This document shows, piece by piece, positions 31,381 to 64,000 of a stretch of 64,000 nt of DNA (its first letter is position 1; every line of letters begins with the position of its first letter). The notes beneath the pieces were generated by a model. The model was not told where the DNA came from, made no database searches, and saw only the letters and a program-made list of their open reading frames with translations. Both the position numbers and the translations under genes were made by a program. The stretch is from Lepidodermella squamata. Lineage: Eukaryota > Animalia > Gastrotricha. The stretch spans positions 2,873,809 to 2,937,808 of the forward strand of contig JBLDXI010000033.1 of the NCBI GenBank assembly GCA_047495785.1. Direction: 5' to 3'.

Positions 31381-32106
31381 GATTCACCAACATAGATGTA
31401 ACTTCGTCCCATTGAATTGCTGTGGATATGAAAGATGCTATTTCCGCAGTTGACTTAGATTAGGCCGAGGAATTTAGTTTATTCTCAACCTGGAATTTCC
31501 TGATGGCGGGATCCGTTATCTTAATTAATTTATTTCTTTAGTTCTTGATCTTTTTACATCTTACTATCGGCATGCGCCAAGACAGTCTTCGTGCTATCAA
31601 CGAAATCACCGATATACGGTAGTAGAAGAAAACCCATAATACTTAATTTTATTATAATTGTTCATTTTTATATACTGTAGATCTCAATTCACAACTTGAG
31701 CCAGCTGATTGACTTTCGGCGCGTTGTGTGGCAAGAAACAAGCCACAAGACGGCGAACATCAGGAGCGCTGGCGAGATAAGCGGCCGATATAATGTGAAA
31801 TGTGAATAGCCTCGCGTTGACGATGGGCAAAGCAAAAGGGACCAACACCTCGTGCCTCCTTGCGAAAGTAGGTTGCAACGTGGCGTAACCCGGCCGGTTC
31901 GTCGGTGTTTTTATCTTCCAGCGAAAGCGTTTTTTTGGTGATGAGGCGAACCAGGCGGCGAGAAAAAATGCGCCTAAGCAGCCTTGGTGTAATCTTTTCT
32001 TGAATTATTCTTGAGTGACGGCAGCTGAAACGTTTCTGCAGCAGGAGACAGCGCGGTAGTCTGCAATACTGGATTTTGCTTCAATCATGTCGCGTTTTTG
32101 TCCACG

Positions 32107-33550
32107 CTATTTCTCCAACAGATGCCAACGTATTGGAAGCTCGGTCTACCTACCTGTGGCCTACGGCGTGCCGCAAGGTAGTGCCATTGGTCCGGTTCTG
32201 TTTCTGCTGTACGTGGCAGATCTACCCGCTGCGATGTCACCCAATGCCACCCTGTACCAGTTCGCTGATGACGTCGCGCTCGTTGTCTCTGCCAAAACTC
32301 GCGACCAACTCGAGGCGGCTATGCAGCGTGAGCTGGACACTGTCGACCGATGGATGAAGGCAAATCGACTAGCCCTCGCTGCCAACAAAAGCCAGGTGAT
32401 GTCGATCGCCTACAATACTACTTCCGAACCCATCGATGTTTCGTTAAACGGGCAAAAAATCGAACCGGTGGACCAAGTCAAATACCTCGGTTTCATCATC
32501 GATTCCCGCCTGTGTTGGTCATCACACATCGATCTAATCGCGAAACGTGTCTCATGGAGAATCAGCCAGTTTTACCAACTACGACGCTTTCTATCAAAGA
32601 AGCAATTGCGAAACGTATACTGCGCTGTGATCCAGCCCTACTTCGACCGCGGCGACAAGGTCTGGAGCACCACCACCAAGGGCAACCTCGACCGTCTTCA
32701 GCGTCTTCAAAACCGAGCCTGCCGTGTGATATGCGGCGTTCGTCTACGCGACAGAAAACGAAGCGAAGAACTGCGGAACAGCCTGAAGCTCGACGATCTA
32801 GCTACTCGGCGCCGCAAGCGATACTCCGCCTTCGTGAAGAAGCTCCAAGTCAGCGGGCATAAAGTCGCCGGAAAATTTGCCATGCCATCACTGCGACCTG
32901 AATCTCGGCATCAAGCGCCACTACTACCTTCCACCTCCACATCTGCCGGCCAGCTGACGGTCCGATTTCGGGGGACAGCGCTGATACGAGACGAGCACGG
33001 CATGCAGAACGTACGAAAGCTAATGAACAGTTTTGTGAGAGGCGCCTTATAACTACCTCGTGTTTTTCTACTATCTTTTCTCCTGATTACCTATATAGCA
33101 CCTTAGTCTATGTTTCTCTTCTTTTCTTGTCACTATGGTTTCAGAGAGATCAGCTGATGGAGAGTGTTTACGCAAACTTCTTGTTTGTTTTGGGCGTATA
33201 ACGGCAAATCCGTCGCCTTCGCTTCTCATTTCCAACTACGAGTAGACTAGTAAACCAGCGGCGTCGACTGATTGTTTCTTTCCAGCGTGACTATGAAAAG
33301 TGTCCACTTTAGTGATTGTTGTTAGCTATTAGTTTCAGTACTCCTCTGTTTTCATGTCCTAACTAATTATATTTATGTCTGTGAATTAATGCCTGTGAAA
33401 ATTTGTCTATTTCTACCCAGATACCTATATTTGTCAGATTTTTCTCTCTACAATTTTCATGATTTCTATTTCTATGTCTAAATGTCCTGTGTGCGTGTGT
33501 GTGTCAAAAGTTGTCAACAAACTTACCGCAATAAAACTTTGAACTTTGAA
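32107..33550 (+). mobile_element. 5'-truncated L2/CR1-clade LINE with CCACG target-site duplication
   Basis: Open RT ORF (GVPQGSAIGP, FADD, KYLG, RLQRLQNRACRVI), 3'UTR with AATAAA and (ACTTTGA)2 tail; CCACG at 32102-32106 and 33551-33555; empty site near 62249. Confidence 0.9.
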
Positions 33551-34059
33551 CCACGAACTTTTTCGTCCAGCCTCCCGATTCGAACATTTCACATTTTGCC
33601 AGCGCAGGACATTTTGATCGTTCGCCCTCGACCTGACCGAAACAACTGCGCAGATTCGGCGTTGTGGCGGTGTGGCGAATTGAGCATTTTGTGTCTTTGC
33701 CAATTTTATTGTTTTGACGTCGTTACGCGAAACAATTCTCCAAATCATCGAGCTGCAAAATCAACTAGAAGGCGAATTTTGTTCTTGTGAGAGTTTCTAG
33801 TTGATTTTGAATTGTCATGTACCTTTTATATGTGAAACTTTGGTACGATACTCGCGTTTTTCATCTCTTGGCTTCCGGTTTCTATGAAATTACAACGCCG
33901 CGCAGCTGGTTAAAACTATTCTCGCGCGCACTTATTACTAATCGCGCAACTTATTGACTTATTGTTATCCCTTGCGCAAACATCGACGATCGACGCACTA
34001 GCTGTTACGCGCCTAAATAAACAAAGATGTTGACGCTCAGAAATTTCGGCACATTGTGA

Positions 34060-35025
34060 CGGATAAAATTTTAATATGGAAATTGAACAGAACAACCAGA
34101 TCGCTCTCTGCGGTGCTCTCGTGAAGACAACTGGGTCGGTTCTGAAGACTGAGGTGTACCACAAACCAACGGACACCGGGCTGTTGTTGCACTTTCAGAG
34201 TCACACCGACACCAAGTATAAGACGTGCCTCATCAAGACCATGCTGTATCGCGCCTACCGGCTTAACAGTGAATGGCTCGGATTCAACAGGGAAGTTGAT
34301 CATCTGCGTAAAACCTTTTAGAATCTTCAATACCCTTTAGCCATGTTTGAGAAGCTGTTGGCATCATTTGTTGACAAGGTTGACCAATGGTATAAAAACT
34401 GAGGAAACGAAGACCGAACCTGTACGCTTTGTGTTACCCTACAAAGACGGGAAAAGTGCTCGACAAGTCAAGATGAGACTCAATGATCTTTCTGGAAAAC
34501 TCCGGGGGGCTGTTCAAGCCATGTTCACAAGCCGGAAAATCAACGAAAATTTCTGAGCGAAGGAGATCAAGCCCGAACTCGTAAACCGCCAGTGCGTCGT
34601 ATATCGTTTTTCATGTCGCCAGTGTGACGCTGGCTATGTTGAGATGACCACACGGCACCTACATCAACGGGTCGAAGAACACAAGCTCGTTTCGAGTTCA
34701 AGTGGCAAACATCTGGCCACACACAAACTGCCTGACAGCTTTGACATCAATGCTCACTTCAAAGTATTACGCAAGTGCAGCAACAGGTGGGACTGCTTGG
34801 TCCACGAAAGTCTACTCATCAAGCAGAAAAAGATTGCTGTGAGCTTCAACGTGCAGTCCGACTCAATAAAATTAAAGCTATTTTGACAGTTTCTATTTTC
34901 ATCCTGATACCTTGTTGTGCTTTCGTTCTTTTCCTGTAATGATTTCTTGTTGTGTTTTCTTTTGTTGTAGCCTGATGATGGTCCGCGCAAGGAACGAAAC
35001 GTCGCCCGTTATAAATAATAAAGTT
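34060..35025 (+). mobile_element. Penelope-like element 3' part (RT C-terminus + GIY-YIG endonuclease + pseudo-LTR), degraded
   Basis: VYHKPTDTGLLLHFQSH, VVYRFSCRQCDAGYVEMTTRHLHQRVEEH, ESLLIKQ; stops and frameshifts. Confidence 0.88.
34968..35006 (+). ncRNA. Minimal type I hammerhead ribozyme of the Penelope pseudo-LTR (degenerate)
   Basis: AGC-CTGATGA-T-GGTCC gcgcaa GGAAC-GAAACGTC-GC: both core boxes and a GUC cleavage triplet; mismatches in stems I and II. Confidence 0.7.
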
Positions 35026-35311
35026 GTAATCAGAAGCAACTTGCGGTCGCTTTCTTTTTTGGTTATTCATTAGCGAGAAATGTGCATTATATTCCGAATC
35101 TATCCGCAAATCTCTTAAGTGTAACTCAGCTCGTGTTATCAGGAAAGAAAGTTGAATTTGAAGGTAGACACGGTAGCGTGGTTGATAGGTGAGGAATCCA
35201 TGGTCTTGGCGGATTTGATCGGCAAGCTTTGGAATTTGCGTGGCGTACCGGTCGCCAGCGCGACGCCATCTACTTCTTCGACCAGCTTCCCTTCTTCTCC
35301 TGACTGCTTGC

Positions 35312-36000
35312 TTCTTCTCAAAAGCATTAGGTTTCAACTGTGTCTTCACCGTCTATTGCTCGGGTTTTCAATTTTTATACAATGAACTCATTGGAATTTC
35401 ATCGATTTCTTAGCCAATATGACTGGAACTATATATCATTGAAAACACACCTTCCACAGATGTGTGCTACATGCGTCTTCTCAGAATTATATACCTGCGT
35501 TTCTTTCTGTTTGCGCCTCGACGAAAACATCGCAGTGCGAAGAGTGCTCCGTGGATGAATTTTGACTTGCGCGGTCGGCTGAGAAATCTGCGTAAATTGT
35601 CCTCTAAATTGAACAGTTCTGGAGTTTTGCCATCAGCAAATTCGACATATCGTGCTGCTAGAAGCTCCTATCAAAAGGCCTATCGAATTGAAAAGGAAAA
35701 ATTTGAGAATGCCACTATTTCCGATCGCTCTCTGAGCTTGTTCTAATCTTATGTTTATACTCGGTTCAAATCACGTTCTGCGATACCGCCCTTGCTTCAT
35801 AATAAGGCTTATTATGAAAATTAGATGTGCACAAAACAAATATCTTGTGAAATGTTTTCTCGGATGCTTATAACAAAAAATCACTGAAGTATGAAGCGAA
35901 ATTCCGATCACTCGATGACTGCCTTCAGGATATAACCTTCAGGATCGTGTCTTGTACTTCATCGCTTCATCGCTTCATCGCTTCAACTCGCGAGCGTTCA
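35312..36000 (+). mobile_element. LINE ORF2-like fragment nested in copia; same insert at ~60580-61260 (-)
   Basis: YDW...APWMN..LR..LRKL..YRAARSSYQK linker-like region; absent from the copia copy at ~44135. Confidence 0.6.
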
Positions 36001-36495
36001 AAAAGTGGCATTAACGTTTAGTGCGCTTGAATGTGAATGAAGTCAAACGCATGGCCTCTCACGGTTTAATTAAAAAAATCTTCTCAGTATGTCTGTGAGA
36101 GCACTGAGCCGCGGTGTTCTCGATTTAGTTCATACTGATTTGGCAGGTCGTGAGCCGACTGTACCTGCTGTCATTCAAAGATGATTATTCTTCCTACTGT
36201 TTAGGTTTCCACTTGTTACAACGTTTTATTTCTTCTACGATCATCTCTTATAGCCTTGTATAGAAAACATAATTCGAGTCACTGACGCGAGCCAATCAGC
36301 TTTCGACAAATTTCAATTCGGAAATTTGGAAGATGCCGTAGTGGAACCAGTGAATCCACAATTATCTGATTGGTCGGGTGGCTTCAAGTCTGTGATTGGT
36401 TGGTTCAAAGAGCACGCGACACACATGGTTCGAGGGGTTGGTTTAATTTTTTTTCTGCGATCATGAAATTTGAAATGTAGCGGTAAGTGCCATCC

Positions 36496-36568
36496 GCCGA
36501 GATAGCTCAGTTGGGAGAGCGTTCGACTGAAGATCTAAAGGTCCCTGGTTCGATCCCGGGTCTCGGCG
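36496..36568 (+). tRNA. tRNA-Phe(GAA) with an anticodon-stem mismatch
   Basis: GCCGAGATAGCTCAGTTGGGAGAGCG TTCGA CTGAAGA TCTAA..GGTTCGATCCCGGGTCTCGGCG followed by a T-run. Confidence 0.85.
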
Positions 36569-36637
36569 TACTTTTTTACGCCGCCTTTGGCCTATCCTAA
36601 TTGCCATGTTAGAAACCCGCGGGGGTTTTCTATCGCA

Positions 36638-36709
36638 GGCCCGTTGGTCTAGGAGTATGATTCTCGCTTCGGGTGCGAGAGATCTCGGGTTCAATTCCCG
36701 AACGTGCCC
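36638..36709 (+). tRNA. tRNA-Pro(CGG) with an acceptor-stem mismatch
   Basis: GGCCCGTTGGTCTAGGAGTATGATTCTCGCTTCGGGTGCGAGAG..GGTTCAATTCCCGAACGTGCCC. Confidence 0.85.
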
Positions 36710-36785
36710 ACTCGTTTTTTCTTCATTTGAATTTCAACAAGGTATTGAAAATTTATCACATAATCCAGGCATTTAATTTCATATC

Positions 36786-36857
36786 TCCCTGGTGGTCTAG
36801 TGGTTAGGATCCCGCGCTTTCACCGCGGCGACCCGGGTTCGATTCCCGGTCAAGGAA
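36786..36857 (+). tRNA. tRNA-Glu(TTC) with an acceptor-stem C-A mismatch
   Basis: TCCCTGGTGGTCTAGTGGTTAGGATCCCGCGCTTTCACCGCGG..GGTTCGATTCCCGGTCAAGGAA. Confidence 0.85.
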
Positions 36858-36911
36858 AGTTTTGCTTTGAAATGAGTTTTTTGCAAAAATCACTGCTTAT
36901 TGCTTATCGCA

Positions 36912-36984
36912 AAAAATCTCAGGGGAATCGAACCTTCAATCTTCTGCTAACTGGGCAGACACTGTATCACTAAGCTACTTTCCC
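36912..36984 (-). pseudogene. tRNA pseudogene, Thr(AGT)-like
   Basis: Minus strand: GTAGCTTAGTGAT (A box), TCTGC-CCAGTTA-GCAGA arm, GGTTCGATTCC (B box); acceptor stem unpaired. Confidence 0.55.
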
Positions 36985-37055
36985 TTTTGGCTTGGATGGC
37001 CATTCAGTCCTAAATTTAAGCTGCCGAAGCAAACGATTCGTGGCAATAAATCTTT

Positions 37056-37128
37056 TGTAGGATACGAGTGCCGATCCTTTTGCCTCTCGCATGTTAAGCG
37101 AGTGCTCTACCATTTGAGCTAATACCCC
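37056..37128 (-). pseudogene. tRNA-Ala-body pseudogene with anticodon changed AGC>AAC and broken T-arm
   Basis: Minus strand: GGGGTATTAGCTCAAATGGTAGAGCACTCGC-TTAACAT-GCGAGAGG..GATCG. Confidence 0.75.
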
Positions 37129-37243
37129 ATGTATTTGAGTCAATATTAAAAAAAAGCATTCTCAACAATAACGTAAAACCAGCAGTAAGTTTTTGAAAAG
37201 CTGGCGCCCTTCGGGAGACTTGAACCACAGAAACTGCGATTAA

Positions 37244-37283
37244 CTGCTCACGGGAGACCAGGGTTCGATTCCCTGCCAAGGAG
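37244..37283 (+). pseudogene. 3' half of a tRNA-Asp-like gene
   Basis: GGGAGACCAGGGTTCGATTCCCTGCCAAGGAG followed by a T-run; no 5' half. Confidence 0.5.
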
Positions 37284-37340
37284 CTAGCTTTTTCCTCGAT
37301 TTTAAAGCTGAACTATGCGTATTGGCCAAAAATGTACAAC

Positions 37341-37413
37341 CGCCCGATGTGGGGCTCGAACCCACGACCCTGGAATTAAGAGTCCCATGCTCTACCGACT
37401 GAGCCAACCGGGC
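37341..37413 (-). tRNA. tRNA-Lys(CTT)
   Basis: Minus strand: GCCCGGTTGGCTCAGTCGGTAGAGCATGGGACTCTTAATTCCAGGGTCGTGGGTTCGAGCCCCACATCGGGCG. Confidence 0.92.
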
Positions 37414-43140: not shown

Positions 43141-43261
43141 TCAAAATGTTTGCGTCCTGAACGTATGAGCCTTTCATTGACGACCTTGGTGTATTTTATT
43201 CTTTCCGTCTAGAACTGAAGAAACAGCCTGAGAAGAAAACCAGAAGAATTGAACAAAAGCA

Positions 43262-44460
43262 ATGGGTATCTTTGCCAATTTCATTGTTTTGACCTCGTTA
43301 CGCGAAAAACCTCTAAACCTTCGAGTATCTGTGTAGCAAGAGGCAGCTCCTCGAAGAAAATACTCTTATTGCATCGATCGGCGAATTTAGCTTTCAGGGC
43401 TAATGGACTCCCACCGCACATGACGCGACAATAATAATCTGATGGCTTTGATCGCTGAGATAGACTCATCCGAGAACCATCCAAGTCTGATTCCATCCAC
43501 AGTTGAAACTGCTGCTTCCAATCTGCTTTCGCAAATAGAGACAGACGCGAAGTTGTGCAATACGGCGAAACGATAACCTCGTTTTTGGCAATGGCGAAGT
43601 GACGAGATGAGAGAGCCGGAGATTCGCGCAACCTCTCTAAGGCCAGAGAGAATCTCCTCGCTGGCAACGCCTTGAATTATGATTCATTTGTCTTGTACAT
43701 CTAATTATACATAGGTCGCCACGGCACTAACGCCGCCCTGGTTAGTTGATAGCGGATGATGTTAGCATGTTACTGCGAGCCATGATTACGTTATACTGAG
43801 TTCTATCCGAAATGATTCTAAAGCAAAGAGATCTAAAATGGTAGCTTATTGCATTCAATTGGTGAGATGTACTTTTTTCCTGCTACTTCTGGTGCGAAGC
43901 GTGCATTAATGAGAAATGTACATTATATTCCGAATCTGTCCGCAAATCTCTTAAGCAGTGTAACTCAGCTCGTATTATCAGGAAAGAAAGTCGCCTTTGA
44001 AGGTAGTCACTGTGGTGATGGGTGAGGAATCCATGGTCTTGGCTGATTTGATCGGCAAGCTTTGGTATGTGTGTGGCGTAACGGTCGCCAGCGCGACGCC
44101 CTCTACTCCTTCGACCGCTTCCCTTCTTCTCCTGATTATCTTGTAAAGTGGCATGGATGTTTAGTGCACTTGAATGTGAGTGAAGTCAAATGCATGGCCT
44201 CTCACGGTTTAATTGGACTCTAAGGAAAATCTTCTTAGTAGGGGAAAGTCCATAAGCTTGTCCACCGGCGAGTTGAGCATGCACAGAGCCGCGGTGTTCT
44301 TGATTTAGTTCATACTGATTTGGCAGGTCCTGAGCGGACTGCCGGGCTTTTTAATCATGATTTGTACCTCCTGTCATTCAAAGATGATTATTCTTCCTGC
44401 AATATAGGTTTCCCGCTTGTTACAAAGGGTTATATTGTTGCTACGATCATCTCTTATCGC
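43262..44460 (+). mobile_element. Ty1/copia-like fragment, copy B
   Basis: VHYIPNLSANLL, KWHGCLVHLN, VLDLVHTDLAGP..YLLSFKDDYS (protease, GAG-pre-integrase and integrase remnants). Confidence 0.75.
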
Positions 44461-46658
44461 AAACTGCGAAATCAAATTGCGGGTTTGCGGTCAAATACCG
44501 CCAACCGAATAAACTCGAGCGCAACCACAAGGGCTACGTTGATGCGTGCCATCCGCTATCTTGGCGTGCCATCGGACAGCTTGCGGCAGACAACGTGAGG
44601 GACAGCTCTTTGCCAATCACGATTGGCCGGAGTGAAAACCACCGTCAATCTCTCGCCATCGTCGTCACAGCCGCCGAACGCCGAATACGCCCGCCGCTCC
44701 TTTGTCGTCTCGTCTCAGCCTACATCAGCCTGTCGGTGAGTAACAATCAAGTATTATCAATTTTTATTTTCTTGCTTGTTTTCCAGATCCTCGCCCTTCT
44801 GTAACAAAACGAAGAAATTCTGCTCACTGCTGCCGACCCGAGTCAACCGGCCAATTGCCGCGCTCCCGCCCTCGGCTCGAATAAATGGGCTATATTCACT
44901 TGATATTCACTTGTCACGGAGTCTTCGACTACGACCGCTTGGCGGACGGCATCGCCTAGCCAACCAGCGCCAATAAATCAAACAGCACGACAATCGACGA
45001 CTCGAGTGCTCATGTGTAGCTCGAATCTTTTGAAGCACGTTTTGTTGCTGTTTTCTCTGTTTTCTCTTAAGTTCACAATATTATTGAACAGTCACGTATC
45101 GTTTTATTTTCGGCGACCAAATTCGGCGATGCGACGAGCTAGTGGGGCAACGATGAGCGCCGTCTTCACGCTGCGCCTGATGCTGAAGCTGCCGGCGCCG
45201 CCCATCCGGCCCACTGGCCGACTCATGAGGTACAGCACAGAGGTGAAACTTGACTATGTCAGGATATTTCCAGTCTCCAGTGAGCAAAACTATCGTTTTC
45301 AACCAGGAAAACCACAGCGACATTCTTGTCATCGTTTTCTGCCTGAGGACTTCGCATTGATCGTCAGTCGTCAGCGCTGGTTTACTTGGTTGTACTAAAA
45401 TGTAAAAACTTAGACCTGCGTTTGAATGCTTGCCGCTTGTCTGCAATAATTCGATTTAGAAGCCAGCAAGACGCCATTGAATTTCTTCCATAGAAACTCG
45501 GTGAATTTTCATAAGTTCCGATGGCTGCGTCCAGCATGTGAATATTCGAATATTTGAACTACGTTCGATCAGTAGGTAACTGCGCAGAGTTCATGCTAAC
45601 GTCTGGTAATCTAGATTTGCTTTTATACAGGGTGAGCAAAGAATAAAGTTCGGTCTGGGCTGTCAATTCGTGAGGTGCGGAAACTGGCAGTAGTCGCCCG
45701 TCCATTACTATGCTAAAACTTGATAAGCTGTACGAATTACGGTAAGAGTGCTGACATGTTAATTGCCTGCTGATAAACGTTCTCATCTTTGTTTTTCATG
45801 CATGTAGCCCTTGGAGCGGAAATGAAGCGGTTACGAAGAAGAGAAGCTGCCGTAGCAAGGCAAACGAAATTTTGGCTGTGCCTGATGCCTGAAATGCTGC
45901 TGAAAATAGGTTGCTGGAATATGGAATACCTGGCACATCTCAAAAATTTACATCTCATTCCGCGATAACATACTACGCATCGACAGGAGCAATTTCAATT
46001 TCGGTAAAAAGAAGCGCGCATTTGACGTGTGTGTGCGAAATGATGAGGAGTCGATTGAATCATTCAAAGCAATCGCTATTGGATTTTTCGAAGGGTGCCA
46101 ACTTGGATTCGAACTCGAGTCGGATTAAATAAACTTATAAACTATGCCACGTCATCTCGCGTTTTGAAGCAGCAATCAGCGGACTCCCACTCGCACTTAC
46201 GACTAACAATTTTTGCGCACATTTGTGCTGATGCAATTAATTACTCTTCGCATTTTTCTCTCTTGAGCTCAATTCATGCTTGAATGAAAACTTCGAAGCA
46301 ATGAAATTAAAATAAAAAGTCTCAAAATGCCGGAAACAATCTGTTTTATTCGGAATTTCACAGCACAGAATCAGGGTTATAGATTGAAAAGGTGTTTCGG
46401 TCTTTGAATTTTTTATCACAGCAGCGGTTTCTTTTTGCGCGGAGCAGTCGTCATCGGCTTCTGTGCGATGCGACGTTCCAGGTCTGAAAACAATACAATG
46501 TTAGACAGAAGGTATTGAATTGAAGCGTAAAATTTACCCATGATAGCGTGTTGAAGGCGGTCACGTTCAGCATTCAGCTGACGGCCAGCTTCTTCCTCGG
46601 CCTCTAACCGGCCCTCCTCCTTTGCTGAAAGTTACTCGATGGAGTTTATTGAAGCGAT

Positions 46659-57100: not shown

Positions 57101-60100
57101 TTGCATAACTTCAACTTTCTCCAGCTGATTTTCCTTATTTTACGGGCTTGTGCCATTTAGTCGTGTTGAATGCCACCTGGAATAAGCTGGAATTTTTCTA
57201 ACCAAATTTTCCCACCGCCTTCCACGAATTTCCAGCTATTTCCAGCTTCGGTTTGAAATTCCAGTCATCTCCAGCGTAAATGCCGATATGGGAATTGCGT
57301 GAATGGAACACTTTTCTACGCAGTCGCGGAGGCACTTGCGCCAGGCTCGCAAAAATTGGAACGCACTGCGCTGAACGCTGAACAACTGCGCCGACTATTG
57401 CCCGATAGACACTTGAGACTAATACTTTTAAGCCTCAAGGATGAACCGACCCGCCGAGTTGACATGGTTAAACGTGAAACCAGCTCGGATGAAAGCATGA
57501 AACTGATTTGGGACTCTTTCTTAGATTTATCGAATGAGTATCTACATTTGAGGCTGCTTCTTTTGAACTGCGCAAATTCGGAAGCGTATTCTTTTTTTAC
57601 ATGAAATTTGGGTCCTGATGAGCTGATTTTTGGACCAAGGACTGTAATTCTGTCGTAAATAAGTCTTCTGTAAATTGTATACTTTCAGCGTATGTACGAT
57701 TAGCCTTGATAGCACTGAATTTCAGCCATCATTGAAACTTCATTTGAGAATAAAATATGCAAAACTGAAAGTGCAAAACTTTTTGAAGGAGCCACAAAAA
57801 ATCTCTCGCTTCCAACAATTTATGCTTACCTGCGCCTTTTGGCATGTCAAACGCTGAAACTTGGCAGGATAACGTCATATAGATCATTCAATTCTTCAGC
57901 ACTGTTGCTTAAACTGTTCCTTATTTTGAATAAAAACCTGCGTTTCAAGTGCTTAATTTCTCCCCGAAAAAATCTGCACGCAAATGCTTCCTCGTATGAA
58001 ATTTATTATAATCTTCTCTTACATGTGCCATAATTGCGCGGCGATCAAATAGAACAAATTATCAGAATGAGAGTGTAAGATCGCAACAAAATAAATAAGC
58101 AAAGTTTATTGTTTTGGCCTAGCGAAAAAAATTAGTTACTATAAATACAAAGATTCAATTTTTGGCGGAACTTCAGAGGCCGCATAAGACCGGGTGAATC
58201 GAGTGAAAATATTGCCAACGTAAATATTGCCAAAGCAGCGTCGAGAATAGAAGCCCACACATTTATACGACCAATTACATGAAAACACGAAAACACGAAA
58301 TAATGACAACAAATGCGGAGAATAAAAATTCGAAATATGCATATTAACATGAGCAAAAAATTGAGCAAAGTCCGGAAATAATAAATCGAATCGTGTATCG
58401 TATCCCGATGACTTCTTATACAAAAAATGCGTGAGATATGTGCTCGATCAAAATCAGAAGCAGCAATATAAGGAAAGAGCACTTCGCAGAAGAACATCAT
58501 AGCAGCAGAAAAAACTAAATTTCCAGGGCAGAAAACCAAAATATTCAAGATATAATAGTAAGTATTACGGCAAGTGATGACGATGCTGCTGCTGTTGCTG
58601 CTGCATGAAGAATGAAGACAAACAAAATCGAGCATCAAGAATCTCAAGCAAAGTTGCAAGTATAAGACCACTTGGCGTCTGGCGTCAATTAAAGTTTGTT
58701 CCGCATTAAATGAATGAGGAACCACGGCCATTAATTGCATGTTATCTGCATAGCCGAATCTAAGGTGTGGTGAGTGAACAGATGAATGCATAAACATTTG
58801 TTTATCGCTAGAACGTGGTTGCGCATGCGCATGCGAACAAGAGGGTGAATCGTCGTTCCAACATAAATCATCAGCGACCCATTCAAATTGTTGATGTAGT
58901 ACAAAACATTGACGACGCAATATTCATCAAGCAGGCCGAGTTTCGCCCAGCGACCGGAATTCGTGAAGCAACAATTTCGATTAACCAGCGATGACACCGC
59001 GGCGAATAGTACGACTTATACGTTTCCGCGTATATGTTCTTAAATTCGGGTTTTTTTCGTGAAACTAGCAATCGCTTGGAAGAACCGTTTGAGTCATCAA
59101 CCGCACGATCGGACAAATTCAGCAATGTCTGCTTCAGATCATGCAGGACAGGAATGTGACACCAATGAGAATCTTCAGGGCGAAGCAAATACGAAAATCG
59201 ATTAAATCAGCGCGAAAGATTTCATTTCGCTGTAAATTCAGCATTTTGCTCGCTCAAATCCGATCTATTACTACATCTTGTCCTTCGAGTTTAACTGCGT
59301 GGCCCACCTTACTGACAAACTCCGCAGCTTTTGCAGGAGACTCAAATTCGAGCATGGCTACTTTCCGCGTAGATGCCGATGTTTGCGCGAAAGCAATGTT
59401 AACAATTGGTTGGTGCCAGCCAACCCTCTACAGAGAAGCCCGAGAATTTCATCCTGCGTTGTCCTCAGCTCAACGTTGGCCTTAGAGATTAACCGCTCAG
59501 AATCCGCTTAGTTAGCCAAAAGTAGTGTTGTTCCATTTCACTTAGGTGACTTGAGCGTTGGAACCGCTGTAGATGAAACAGCCGACGCTGCCGACGTTCC
59601 AACTGAAGGTGATGAGCTAGATGATGAAGGGTCAGCAGAAACGTACCATCAGCCCTGTTGTTGGTACAGCCGAGGCATTTGAAGATTTGTCACGACCTAT
59701 TTCCATCATATAAGAAAGCTTAAATATTCCGATTCATAGGTTGTATATCTAAATTTACCCTTGAAAAATTGCTTGCTGCTGTGTCAACTTTCGCCACGTA
59801 GTTATTTTCTCCTTGCCTGTAAAATCGACAAATCATAGCAAAAATGAATCTTATGCTCATTTTTTTTACCCTTAAAAACGCCAACACCGCCGGATCTTGA
59901 CGAAATTTGTAGCTTCTGCCACTCGACAGAAATAAAGATGTATAGAATCAAACTCTGATGATCAATGCGAAGTCATCAGCCAGAAAACGATGAGAAGAAT
60001 ATCGCTCTGGTTGTCTTGGTTGAAACGATCGTTTCGCCCACTGGAGACTGGAAATATCCTGCAATCGTCAAGTTTCACCTCTGTGTTTCATAAGGTACCG

Positions 60101-60269
60101 GCACTGAGCAAAAAGAGGCGTCGCGCAGGCGCAGAAGATATCACACTGCTGCCGATCATAGAACTCAAGCGTAGCATAATTTGTGTAAGAGGCGAACTGG
60201 CTGATGAAGGCGTACATCAGGTCCAGGAAATGCGGCTTGAAGCTGCGCTAAGTCGCAATTTGCTTTCGG

Positions 60270-62327
60270 TGCTTGTTGGCGTCCAGTTTGCAATAAGAGA
60301 TGATCGTAGAAGAAATAAAACCCTTTGTAACAAGTGGAAACCTAAACAGTAGGAAGAACAATCATCTTTGAATGACAGCAGGTACAGGTACAGTCGGCTC
60401 ACGAAATCAGTTTGAACTAAATCGAGAACACGTGTTCAACTCGCCGGTGGACAAGCTTATGGGCTTTCCCCAGTTGGCAAGGTTCACAGACATACTGAGA
60501 AGATTTTTCTTAATTAAACCGTGAGTGGACATGCGTTTGACTTCATTCACATTCAAGTGCACTAAACGTTCATGCCACTTTTTGAACGCTCGCGAGTTGA
60601 AGCCATGAAGTACAAGACACGGTCCGGTGTGAAGGTTATATCCTGAAGGCAGTCATCGAGTGATCGGAATTTCGCTTCATACTTTAGAGATTTTTTGTTA
60701 TAAGCATCCGAGAAAACAGTCACAATATATTTGTTTTGTGCATATCTAAAGTTCATAATAAGCCTTATTATGAAGCAAGGGCGGTATCGCAGAACGTGAT
60801 TTGAACCGAGTATTAACATAAGAATAGAACAAGCTCAGAGAGCGATCGGAAATAGTGGCATCATCAAATCTTTCCTTTTCAATTCGATAGGCCTTTTGAT
60901 AGGAGCTTCTAGCAGCACGATATTCCGAATTTTCTGATGGCAACACTCCAGAACTGTTCAATTTAGAGGACATTTACGCAGATTTCTCAGCCGACCGCGC
61001 AAGTCCAAATTCATCTACGGAGCACTCTTCGCACTACGATGTTTTCGTCGAGGCACAAACAGAAAGAAACACAGGTATATAATTCTGAGAAGACGCATGT
61101 AGCACACATCTGTGGAAGCTGTGTTATCAATGATATAGCTCCAGTCATATTGGTTAAGAAATCGATGAAATTCCAATGAGTTCATTGTAAAAAAATTGAA
61201 AACCCGAGCAATAGACGGTGAAGACACAGTTGAAACAATGCTTTTGAGGAGAAGCAAGCAGTCAGGAGAAGAAGGCAAGCAGGTCGAAGAAGTAGATGGC
61301 GTCGCGCTGGCGACTGGTACGCCACGCACATACCAAAGCTTGCCGATCAAATCAGCCATGACAATGGATTCCTCACCTATCAACCACGCTACAGTGTCTA
61401 CCTTCAAAGACAACTTTCTTTCCTGATAAGACGAGCACGCTACAGTGTCTACCTTCAAAGACAACTTTCTTTCCTGATAAGACGAGCACGCTACAGTGTC
61501 TACCTTCAAAGACAACTGTCTTTCCTGATAAGACGAGCTGAGTTACCCTTAAGAGATTTGCGGATAGATTCGGAATATAATTCACATTTCTCTCTAATGA
61601 CGCTTTGCACCAGGAGTAGTAGGAAAACAAAAGGACATTCCACCAATGCTACTTGAAGGCAAAAAGGTACCATCACCGATTTTAAATCTTTTTGCTTCAG
61701 ATTCATGTCGAATAGAACTCAGAATATAGCAATAGTGGTTCGCAGTAACATTCTCACTAAATCCACTGTCAACTAACCAGCGATGGTCGAGTATAGGTGT
61801 TGGCATCGGAGTTGGCATGGATGAGAGGGCATAATCACGAGCAACTTTATTTAACAAAATGTTAACATGCGCATGTAGGAATAGACAATCCCGTGCACAA
61901 GAAAGAAATTTTCTCGGCGTTCAAAGCCATCGTACAGCTTGATTATCCCTGTCGTGGCATGTGCGGTGAAAGTCCATTAGTCCTGAAAACTGAATTCGCT
62001 GATCGATGCAATCGGAGCATTTTCTTCGATGAGACGCCTCTTGCTACGCAGCTCGAAGATTTGGAGAATTTTTTCGCGTAACGACGTCAAAACAATAAAA
62101 TTGGCAAAGGTACAAAATGCTCAATTCGCCACACCGCCACAACGCCGAATCTGCGCAGTTGTTTCTGTCAGGTCGAGGGCGAACGATCAAAATGTCTTGC
62201 GCTGGCAAAATGTGAAATGTTCGAATCGGGAGGCTGGGCGAAAAAGTTCGTGGACAAAAACGCGACATGATTGAAGCAAAGTCCAATATTGCAGACTACC
62301 GCACTGTCTCCTGCTGCAGAAACGTTT
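60270..62327 (-). mobile_element. Ty1/copia-like element, copy C (gag, protease and integrase remnants)
   Basis: WLVDSGFSENVT protease site, KIGDGTFL, VNYIPNLSANLLRVTQL, YLLSFKDDCS. Confidence 0.8.
61385..61537. repeat. 51-bp tandem triplication
   Basis: CACGCTACAGTGTCTACCTTCAAAGACAACTTTCTTTCCTGATAAGACGAG x3; single unit in copies A and B. Confidence 0.95.
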
Positions 62328-62579
62328 GCTCTTTATTTCTTTAATCCGCAGGCCGTAAGGACTGTGTCTTATCCCAGGGGAAAAGTTGCCTGCAGAAGGT
62401 ACCTTGCCAAAACAAGGCGAATATTGACGGGTCTTCTCGGTCCCCGAAAATTTTGAAAATTGAAATTTGAAAATTCTAGGTTTTAATTTTGAAATAATAA
62501 TTTCCGCTATTTCTTTACGGAATAATATAAAATATTAGTAAATTTGAAAAATAATTTTAAATCTACTGTGAAAACGTAG

Positions 62580-63346
62580 CGCGCTAATTTATTCAAATCT
62601 TTTGCGGGAATCTGCGGTGATGTTCATCCAAACCCCGGCCCGAAGTGCCAAGCTTGTGCTAAACCTTGTAAAACCGATTACGTCCAGTGCATTGGTTGTC
62701 AAATTTCTTACCACAAAAAGTGTATAACTGATTCGGAACTTGGAAATGGCCCAGTGAGTGGCTGGCTCTGTGCATGCTGTGCTAGCTGCAGGTGTAAGGT
62801 TTGCGATGAAGCAGCAGTGGAGAAGGTGATTGAGTGCAGTTCTTGCCTAACGTGGTGGCATTACAAGTGCGTTAAAATGTCATCGAAGACCTTCGGCCAG
62901 CACCAGAAAAACGCTAATCTATCATGGCAGTGCCCCGTTTGTAAGGAGATGGGCGCGGATAAGAACACCGAAATTGCAACGGCCGATGCCCAAGAGGCCA
63001 TAAGATCGTGCCTGGCCATTAAACCGACCAACAAATGGCATGACTTGATCGGCTGGCGGGAAAGCTTCCCATCATGTGTATTGACAGCCCAGTTCAACCT
63101 CAACGGCCTTCTTGTACTGGAAAACACACGTCTTCAAGAGGTAGCCGACTTCATCTCAACCTACAAACCAGACATCGTCTTTCTTTGCGAAACCAAAGTT
63201 CCTCCTGGCAAGCTAACCACTATGGTTCACAAGTACTTTCAAGGCTATGTGTTGCACTCGAATGGCCGCAAAAAAGGGGCCGGAGGAGTAGCTATACTCC
63301 ATCGCTTGCCACACGAGATCGAATCTGGTCAAATCAAAAATACTTT
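62580..63346 (+). mobile_element. Non-LTR retrotransposon ORF N-terminus: 2A-like peptide + two PHD fingers + APE endonuclease, truncated by the telomere
   Basis: Frame is open from 62580: CGDVHPNPGP, CQAC..CIGC..HKKC..WLCAC, CKVC..CSSC..HYKC..WQCPVC, QFNLNGL, PDIVFLCETK, GGVAIL. Confidence 0.9.
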
Positions 63347-63383
<37 letters not shown>

Positions 63384-63982
63384 GGTTAGGGTTAGGGTTA
63401 GGGTTAGGGTTAGGGTTAGGGTTAGGGTTAGGGTTAGGGTTAGGGTTAGGGTTAGGGTTAGGGTTAGGGTTAGGGTTAGGGTTAGGGTTAGGGTTAGGGT
63501 TAGGGTTAGGGTTAGGGTTAGGGTTAGGGTTAGGGTTAGGGTAGGGTTAGGGTTAGGGTTAGGGTTAGGGTTAGGGTTAGGGTTAGGGTTAGGGTTAGGG
63601 TTAGGTTAGGGTTAGGGTTAGGGTTGGGTTAGGGTTAGGGTTAGGGTTAGGGTTAGGGTTAGGGTTAGGGTTAGGGTTAGGGTTAGGGTTAGGGTTAGGG
63701 TTAGGGTTAGGGTTAGGGTTAGGGTTAGGGTTAGGGTTAGGGTTAGGGTTAGGGTTAGGGTTAGGGTTAGGGTTAGGGTTAGGGTTAGGGTTAGGGTTAG
63801 GGTTAGGGTTAGGGTTAGGGTTAGGGTTAGGGTTAGGGTTAGGGTTAGGGTTAGGGTTAGGGTTAGGGGTTAGGGTTAGGGTTAGGGTTAGGGTTAGGGT
63901 TAGGTTAGGGTTAGGGTTAGGGTTAGGGTTAGGGTTAGGGTTAGGGTTAGGGTTAGGGTTAGGGTTAGGGTTAGGGTTAGGG
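63347..63982 (+). repeat. Telomeric (TTAGGG)n array, G-strand running toward the end
   Basis: About 635 bp of TTAGGG with rare single-base variants. Confidence 0.99.
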
Positions 63983-63983
63983 C

Positions 63984-64000
63984 ACTCTCACGAGATGTGT
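63984..64000 (-). other. Probable untrimmed PacBio barcode (bc1003) remnant
   Basis: Reverse complement is ACACATCTCGTGAGAG+T, matching the recalled bc1003 sequence plus the T-overhang. Confidence 0.8.

Follow-up and report, generated by a model that had tools for sequence, protein, structure and literature searches.

Telomere repeats joined to a truncated LINE reading frame at a contig tip of the gastrotrich Lepidodermella squamata

How does a chromosome end come to carry telomere repeats that are joined straight to the front third of a LINE reading frame? This question is raised by the tip of the 2.94-Mb contig C33 from the 121-Mb assembly of Lepidodermella squamata (151 contigs); the last 64 kb of this contig (C33:2873809-2937808) constitute the window analyzed here. 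A sequence-only reading of the window had proposed that telomerase recently healed a break within a retrotransposon. We regard a break in the LINE followed by telomerase addition as the best, and a probable, explanation of this junction, which is known from the assembly alone.

Anatomy of the contig tip and its junction

The features of the tip, in the order of their positions in the window, are as follows.

62343-62613, plus strand: AT-rich unit of 271 nt, 83% identical to C21:2547719-2547982 (minus strand)
62580-63346, plus strand: N-terminal piece of an APE-type non-LTR retrotransposon; 255 open codons ending in ...GQIKNTL, 3' side cut by the telomere
62616-62642, plus strand: 2A-like core GDVHPNPGP, in which His replaces the consensus Glu (compared with PMC3708506)
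62643-62942, plus strand: two PHD-type zinc fingers, the second of which is a strong Pfam PHD match (62793-62942, 3.2e-9)
63087-63346, plus strand: N-terminal third of an APE endonuclease (Exo_endo_phos in Pfam, 2.6e-9; the match is confined to profile positions 1-80 of 225)
63345-63348, plus strand: junction; the element extends with certainty to the T at 63346, and GG at 63347-63348 fits either a continuation of the element or the repeat
63347-63982, plus strand: telomere array of GGTTAG, about 106 units, whose G-strand points 5' to 3' to the contig end
63983-64000, plus strand: C, A-tail and 16-nt library barcode (the barcode itself at 63985-64000), technical sequence

The reading frame of the LINE piece lacks an ATG and presents, in this order, RANLFKSFAGICGDVHPNPGP (a 2A-like motif), two PHD-type fingers and the start of the APE endonuclease; solved exonuclease III structures gave a weak match over the same N-terminal part of the APE domain. 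An alignment with L044 (1507 aa) and L045 (1073 aa), full-length relatives in the same genome that are 29-30% identical to the piece, showed the motifs N-x-N-G, (S/C)E(T/S)K and GGGVAIL to be kept and YRPP, GDSNIN, LDHIW, SDH and the entire RT to be missing from the LINE piece. Since both relatives possess the full 2A-PHD-APE-RT order, it is the distal part that is missing from the C33 piece. The sequence-only reading had likewise noted the lack of the later APE motifs and of the RT, and it is borne out by this alignment and by the restricted span of the Pfam match. Judged by its sequence, the piece appears to belong to an APE-type non-LTR element.

The frame is open up to 63346 and the array starts at 63347, with ...AATACTTT followed directly by GGTTAGGG; the abrupt switch from a stop-free APE frame into near-pure TTAGGG that had been described for this site was thus confirmed. 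Tandem Repeats Finder delineated the array at 63347-63982 with a period of 6, 106.3 copies and 98% matches. Its six imperfect units are single-base variants that are scattered along the array (63359, 63540, 63605, 63622, 63867 and 63904), and none of these six variants over 636 nt is clustered at the junction, where we detected neither degenerate repeats nor a subtelomeric zone, in keeping with the earlier claim of a clean transition. When up to one mismatch was allowed, TTAGGGTTAGGG occurred 98 times in the window, always within 63349-63982 (chance expectation, 0.18). The 64-kb window is otherwise free of telomeric tracts, and the 5' side of the LINE carries no telomeric repeats, again as the sequence-only reading had stated.

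Element and array share precisely GG at the junction, since the repeat contains no TGG. An overlap of this size (2 nt) is expected for 5/16 random ends (31%), as 5/16 dinucleotides occur in the repeat, and since it stands at chance level, the microhomology provides no evidence; the proposed GG/GGT seed gains no support from it. The last five bases of ...CTTTGG are all T or G, as would happen about once in 32 times by chance. T/G-rich ends are the type of end preferred by telomerase.

The LINE has its sense strand oriented outward, 5' to 3' towards the chromosome end, and it is the 3' side that it lacks. Retrotransposition truncates 5' ends, not 3' ends. Elements that are copied onto the 3' end of the G-strand (HeT-A/TART, Athena, endonuclease-independent LINEs) have a sense strand that runs from the tip inward, and their distal 5' end is often truncated. 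The outward-pointing 3' side of the C33 LINE therefore excludes telomere-primed attachment, and the orientation argument that had been raised against a HeT-A/TART- or Athena-like origin holds.

Copy number and relatives of the LINE piece

We searched the assembly with the 787-nt piece at the DNA level and found no other copy, only 54 nt of leader on C21. At the protein level, the closest resident elements are 29-30% identical, and the best match among 1.84 billion protein representatives reached 34% identity; length-matched protein clusters yielded no match to the LINE piece, and the 32-mer immediately before the junction is absent from metagenome contigs. An intact family copy from which microhomology or loss could be measured was found neither in the assembly nor in the protein sets nor in the metagenome contigs, and the assembly holds no second haplotype or alternative contig for the C33 end. 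Since the DNA of the LINE is single-copy in the assembly, the same junction cannot recur across chromosomes, and the suggestion that other ends might terminate in the same family finds no second DNA copy in the 121 Mb to rest on.

An N-terminal 2A-like motif has been described in elements of the Rex1, Crack, L2, CR1 and Ingi clades (Odon et al. 2013, PMC3708506). The C33 LINE resembles such 2A-bearing APE non-LTR elements in that GD(V/I)xxNPGP precedes the APE domain within a single long frame, and its resident relatives extend into the RT. It differs from them in having His for the key Glu, in the two PHD fingers between the 2A motif and the APE domain, and in the lack of a close relative. 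The 1507-aa frame of L044 (L044:3094-7617, minus strand, corresponding to C33:1999093-2003616) is apparently intact; in it, GDIESNPGP, a canonical 2A motif, is followed by two PHD fingers, the APE domain and the RT. The approximately 385 residues ahead of this 2A motif are largely hydrophobic, and so long a hydrophobic N-terminal part is unusual.

Like HeT-A/TART of Drosophila and the Athena Penelope-like elements of bdelloid rotifers, the C33 LINE is a retroelement that adjoins telomere repeats at a chromosome end. In those systems, the 3' end faces the centromere and truncation affects the distal 5' side, whereas the C33 LINE, an APE-bearing element, has its 3' side towards the end and is 3'-truncated. 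SART/TRAS insertions have repeats on both sides; here, repeats are present on the distal side only. Hebe of Adineta vaga is a subtelomeric non-LTR element, some copies of which are 3'-truncated beside telomeric repeats (PMC2861651), and the C33 LINE is similar in that it lies in a subtelomeric, transposon-rich region and is 3'-truncated next to telomeric repeats. Unlike the C33 LINE, Hebe belongs to the jockey clade, has a CCHC ORF1 and about 15 copies, and deletions, not telomere addition, were invoked to explain its truncations.

Explanations for the junction

Since the orientation is opposite to that of HeT-A and Athena and the junction is abrupt and clean, the C33 tip is best read as a broken end onto which telomerase added repeats. 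A non-LTR copy of the 2A-PHD-APE-RT type would have resided among the many transposons of the subterminal region, with the G-rich strand as its sense strand; a chromosome break within the endonuclease-coding part would then have led to the loss of everything distal to it. The exposed T/G-rich 3' end (...ACTTTGG or ...ACTTT) would have served as a primer for telomerase, and the addition of GGTTAG repeats, followed by C-strand fill-in, would have produced a new telomere of at least 636 bp. In this scheme, we infer the break, the action of telomerase and the former presence of the lost part at this site. With regard to the recent healing that had been proposed, healing stands as the best reading, and its recency is plausible in view of the clean array and the open frame. 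The event is best read as a one-off ordinary break that was sealed by telomerase, not as a programmed or recurrent site. Against a simple insertion followed by a break speaks that the piece seems to be cut at its 5' side as well, a cut that such a history does not need.

De novo telomere healing is known from human terminal deletions, from truncations of subtelomeric Plasmodium genes, and from broken ends in yeast and plants. The C33 tip resembles chromosome healing in its passage from unique sequence (here a coding frame) into canonical, end-oriented repeats, in what may be a short T/G-rich seed and in the lack of a subtelomeric buffer; it differs from these precedents in that there is no intact allele or copy for comparison and in that its support may come from a minority of molecules. 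In Adineta vaga, neotelomeres have been reported at heterogeneous deletion breakpoints (PMC13564844), and an ongoing neotelomere dynamic has been proposed for irradiated animals of this species; the animal studied here uses TTAGGG, as opposed to the bdelloid TGTGGG. The C33 end would be a new instance of a well-known process and carries modest weight unless ends prove to be heterogeneous or tissue-specific. If real, it would represent a clean natural case of telomerase healing inside a coding frame and would mark this arm as recently shortened; healing and retroelement-chain routes of end repair would then coexist in one genome.

We consulted three sequencing runs, all in the form of Logan contigs. 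Contigs from run X1 could be placed up to 63108; 63342-63390 was skipped as repeat, and since contigs with TTAGGG may have been filtered out, the blank beyond 63108 has no bearing either way. The unique flank at 57600-60279 is covered in X1 by zero-difference contigs with depths of 21-31, and the repeats between this flank and the LINE reach summed depths of 70-300. A single zero-difference contig (62487-63108, depth 3.2) represents the LINE, and its depth is seven- to nine-fold below that of the unique flank; since this contig runs across the left edge of the LINE, X1 confirms the join at that point. A difference of this size points to a minority status of the assembled tip in X1, or to a different isolate as the source of X1, and the assembled end may rest on few molecules. 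It is rather unlikely, and put forward only tentatively, that the LINE-capped end is present in a minority of genome copies and that, in some cells or clonal lines, this arm is being broken and re-capped by telomerase at positions that vary. Such a situation would amount to an ongoing natural neotelomere dynamic or, conceivably, even to a difference between soma and germline, both of which belong to this same tentative reading. As a separate observation, an X1 contig with a depth of 70.7 is a variant of 60251-61348 that differs from the window by 31 bases and several indels; nothing closer to it than 89-90% is present in the assembly, and the window's version has no separate X1 contig.

Among the alternatives to break and healing, an artefact is unlikely: a chimeric long-read molecule or a weak assembly tip would have joined an unrelated telomere fragment to the LINE, and the true chromosome would continue beyond it. 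The contig ends in a 16-mer library barcode, probably PacBio barcode bc1003. The assembly contains 190 occurrences of this 16-mer (31 forward, 159 reverse), very often at contig positions 1-16 or at the last base, and never in a control orientation. With the barcode at the end of the window, C33 ends where one long read ended. That 190 barcodes were left untrimmed, some of them within contigs, lends the artefact some weight, as do the stop of X1 coverage short of the junction and the LINE depth of only 3.2. The window contains no further barcode, not even between the LINE and the array, and the junction is therefore not one of the barcode-linked joins of this assembly. Moreover, the repeats are correctly oriented, begin at the first unit and extend to the end of the read, the remainder of the LINE is found nowhere in the assembly, and a depth of 3.2 means that more than one read has the LINE beside its left flank.

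Untrimmed barcodes were seen both at contig ends and in contig interiors (e.g., C2:1-16, C4:1-16, C13:1117-1132 and C1:2059199-2059214), and those inside contigs are artificial insertions that may mark weak joins. The start of C13 is like the C33 tip in design, with a barcode, a T and then the insert. Its first 1971 nt (C13:1-1971) comprise a barcode, 340 nt of non-telomeric sequence, about 125 CCCTAA units, an internal barcode, 37 nt of repeats and apparently coding sequence. This start is two stitched reads with different distal ends; the molecules of that chromosome end differ. Annotators should be aware that contig tips of this assembly contain leftover barcodes and that their read support may be low.

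The left edge of the LINE piece bears on a further history, which we consider improbable. LINE DNA or cDNA, in the form of a 733-bp piece truncated on either side, would have been attached at 62613/62614 to a chromosome end that lacked a cap, and telomerase would then have capped it; the whole element would never have been present at this site; the final step, healing by telomerase, is identical to that of the break-and-heal explanation. In accord with a captured fragment, 62613/62614, five codons ahead of GDVHPNPGP, is the exact point at which the AT-rich unit ceases to resemble C21. A start codon is lacking from the frame, which reaches back only 20 codons from NPGP to the nearest upstream stop, as opposed to the 40-80 residues into ORF2 at which the 2A motif is usually found in described elements (PMC3708506), and the frame is open even though the element is an orphan, in this genome as well as in public data. 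On the other hand, 5' truncation is a normal outcome of LINE insertion and accounts for the left edge, and the 271-nt unit may be the leader of the element itself. From the sequence, the left edge appears to be either a 5' truncation of the LINE piece at about 62614 or the border between the piece and a leader formed by the 271-nt unit. The composition of the piece (GC 48.2%, GC3 51.8%) equals that of the resident LINEs, and a foreign origin, for which base composition gave no signal, was dismissed.

It is very unlikely that the end arose by programmed or retroelement-defined breakage with telomere addition, i.e., by programmed DNA elimination. Indirectly, the apparent under-representation of the end in X1 would fit such a process, and the missing family of the element could be imagined if its copies were restricted to the germline. 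The assembly contains no second copy of the element or of the junction, and there is no shared motif to define a break site. We surveyed the assembly for tracts of at least four TTAGGG repeats followed by a non-T base, obtained 26 hits and examined 21 of them in pieces of about 600 nt. Most of the examined tracts are 24-108 nt long and lie within dispersed repeat families with identical flanks. A sense-strand LINE frame joined to a tract was found in none of these 21 (0/21), and the retroelement-defined breakage that the sequence-only reading had envisaged is accordingly not borne out, with a single-copy LINE and no recurrent junction.

The only long open frame that touches a tract in this survey, on C46 at 20 kb from the contig end, is antisense, as is expected of telomere-primed attachment. 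Least credible of all is that the C33 LINE itself arose by telomere-primed (endonuclease-independent) retrotransposition or as a telomere-repeat-specific LINE of the SART/TRAS kind, since, despite the C46 frame and a retroelement on the telomere tract at the C13 start, its orientation is the reverse of that given by priming from the G-strand 3' end, its truncation is on the 3' side and its 5' side has no flanking telomere repeats.

For the break-and-heal explanation, one feature of the array deserves mention. A single non-telomeric C follows the array directly, ahead of the A-tail and the barcode. Across the surveyed TTAGGG hits, the base after the tract is C in 14 of 26, and those that were fetched often go on as CTGG, CTAG or CTGA; the stray C at C33 could be the first base of such a continuation. 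Further elements might possibly lie beyond the array, as they do at the C13 start, which would make it interstitial, and this counts against a healed break.

The survey also brought to light two dispersed families with short internal TTAGGG tracts of 24-55 nt that are joined at the same nucleotide on one side. In the first (L073, L074, L078 and L085; C7:2129074, C7:2206642, C11:1652459 and C32:2235689), both flanks are identical. In the second (L075, L077 and L080; C10:2420317, C11:1057668 and C15:3024811), ...AACTGG or ...AACTGC always precedes the tract, and the distal sequence varies.

Subterminal surroundings

The distal 30 kb of the window contain few recognizable genes and many transposon fragments. 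One repeat block adjoins the AT-rich unit.

59955-62327, no strand assigned: subterminal repeat block, an inverted paralogue of 32028-36254 (89-97%) and 43258-45367 (72-88%); not part of the LINE

Three copies of this block (about 2-4 kb) are present in the last 32 kb, the terminal one inverted, and further copies are found on C3, C17 and C2. The three copies could be the relic of an old inverted duplication at the C33 end, or merely a dispersed element. A fold-back artefact was considered and rejected, as the inverted paralogues are only 89-97% identical.

The internal paralogue contains, at approximately 32117-33550, a 5'-truncated LINE of another family that covers the C-terminal half of the RT and is open over 321 codons; about 20 fragmentary copies of this family are present in the genome. 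The terminal paralogue is devoid of that LINE and shows a 17-nt overlap at 62237-62253. From the aligned sequences, it looks like an empty site, with the 17-nt overlap as the unduplicated target site. We rejected the fragment at 32117-33550 as a member of the family of the terminal LINE piece: its longer relative on C74 has a CCHC ORF1 and an APE domain without 2A or PHD, and that APE domain is 29% identical over 65 residues to that of the orphan LINE.

Run X2 revealed a spliced minus-strand transcript at approximately 58080-60300, with introns at 59694-59757 and 59815-59869. Within the terminal repeat block, a 51-nt tandem repeat is present in three copies that are 99% identical (61385-61538). 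Five tRNA genes, located on both strands, are clustered within 920 nt at 36496-37413.
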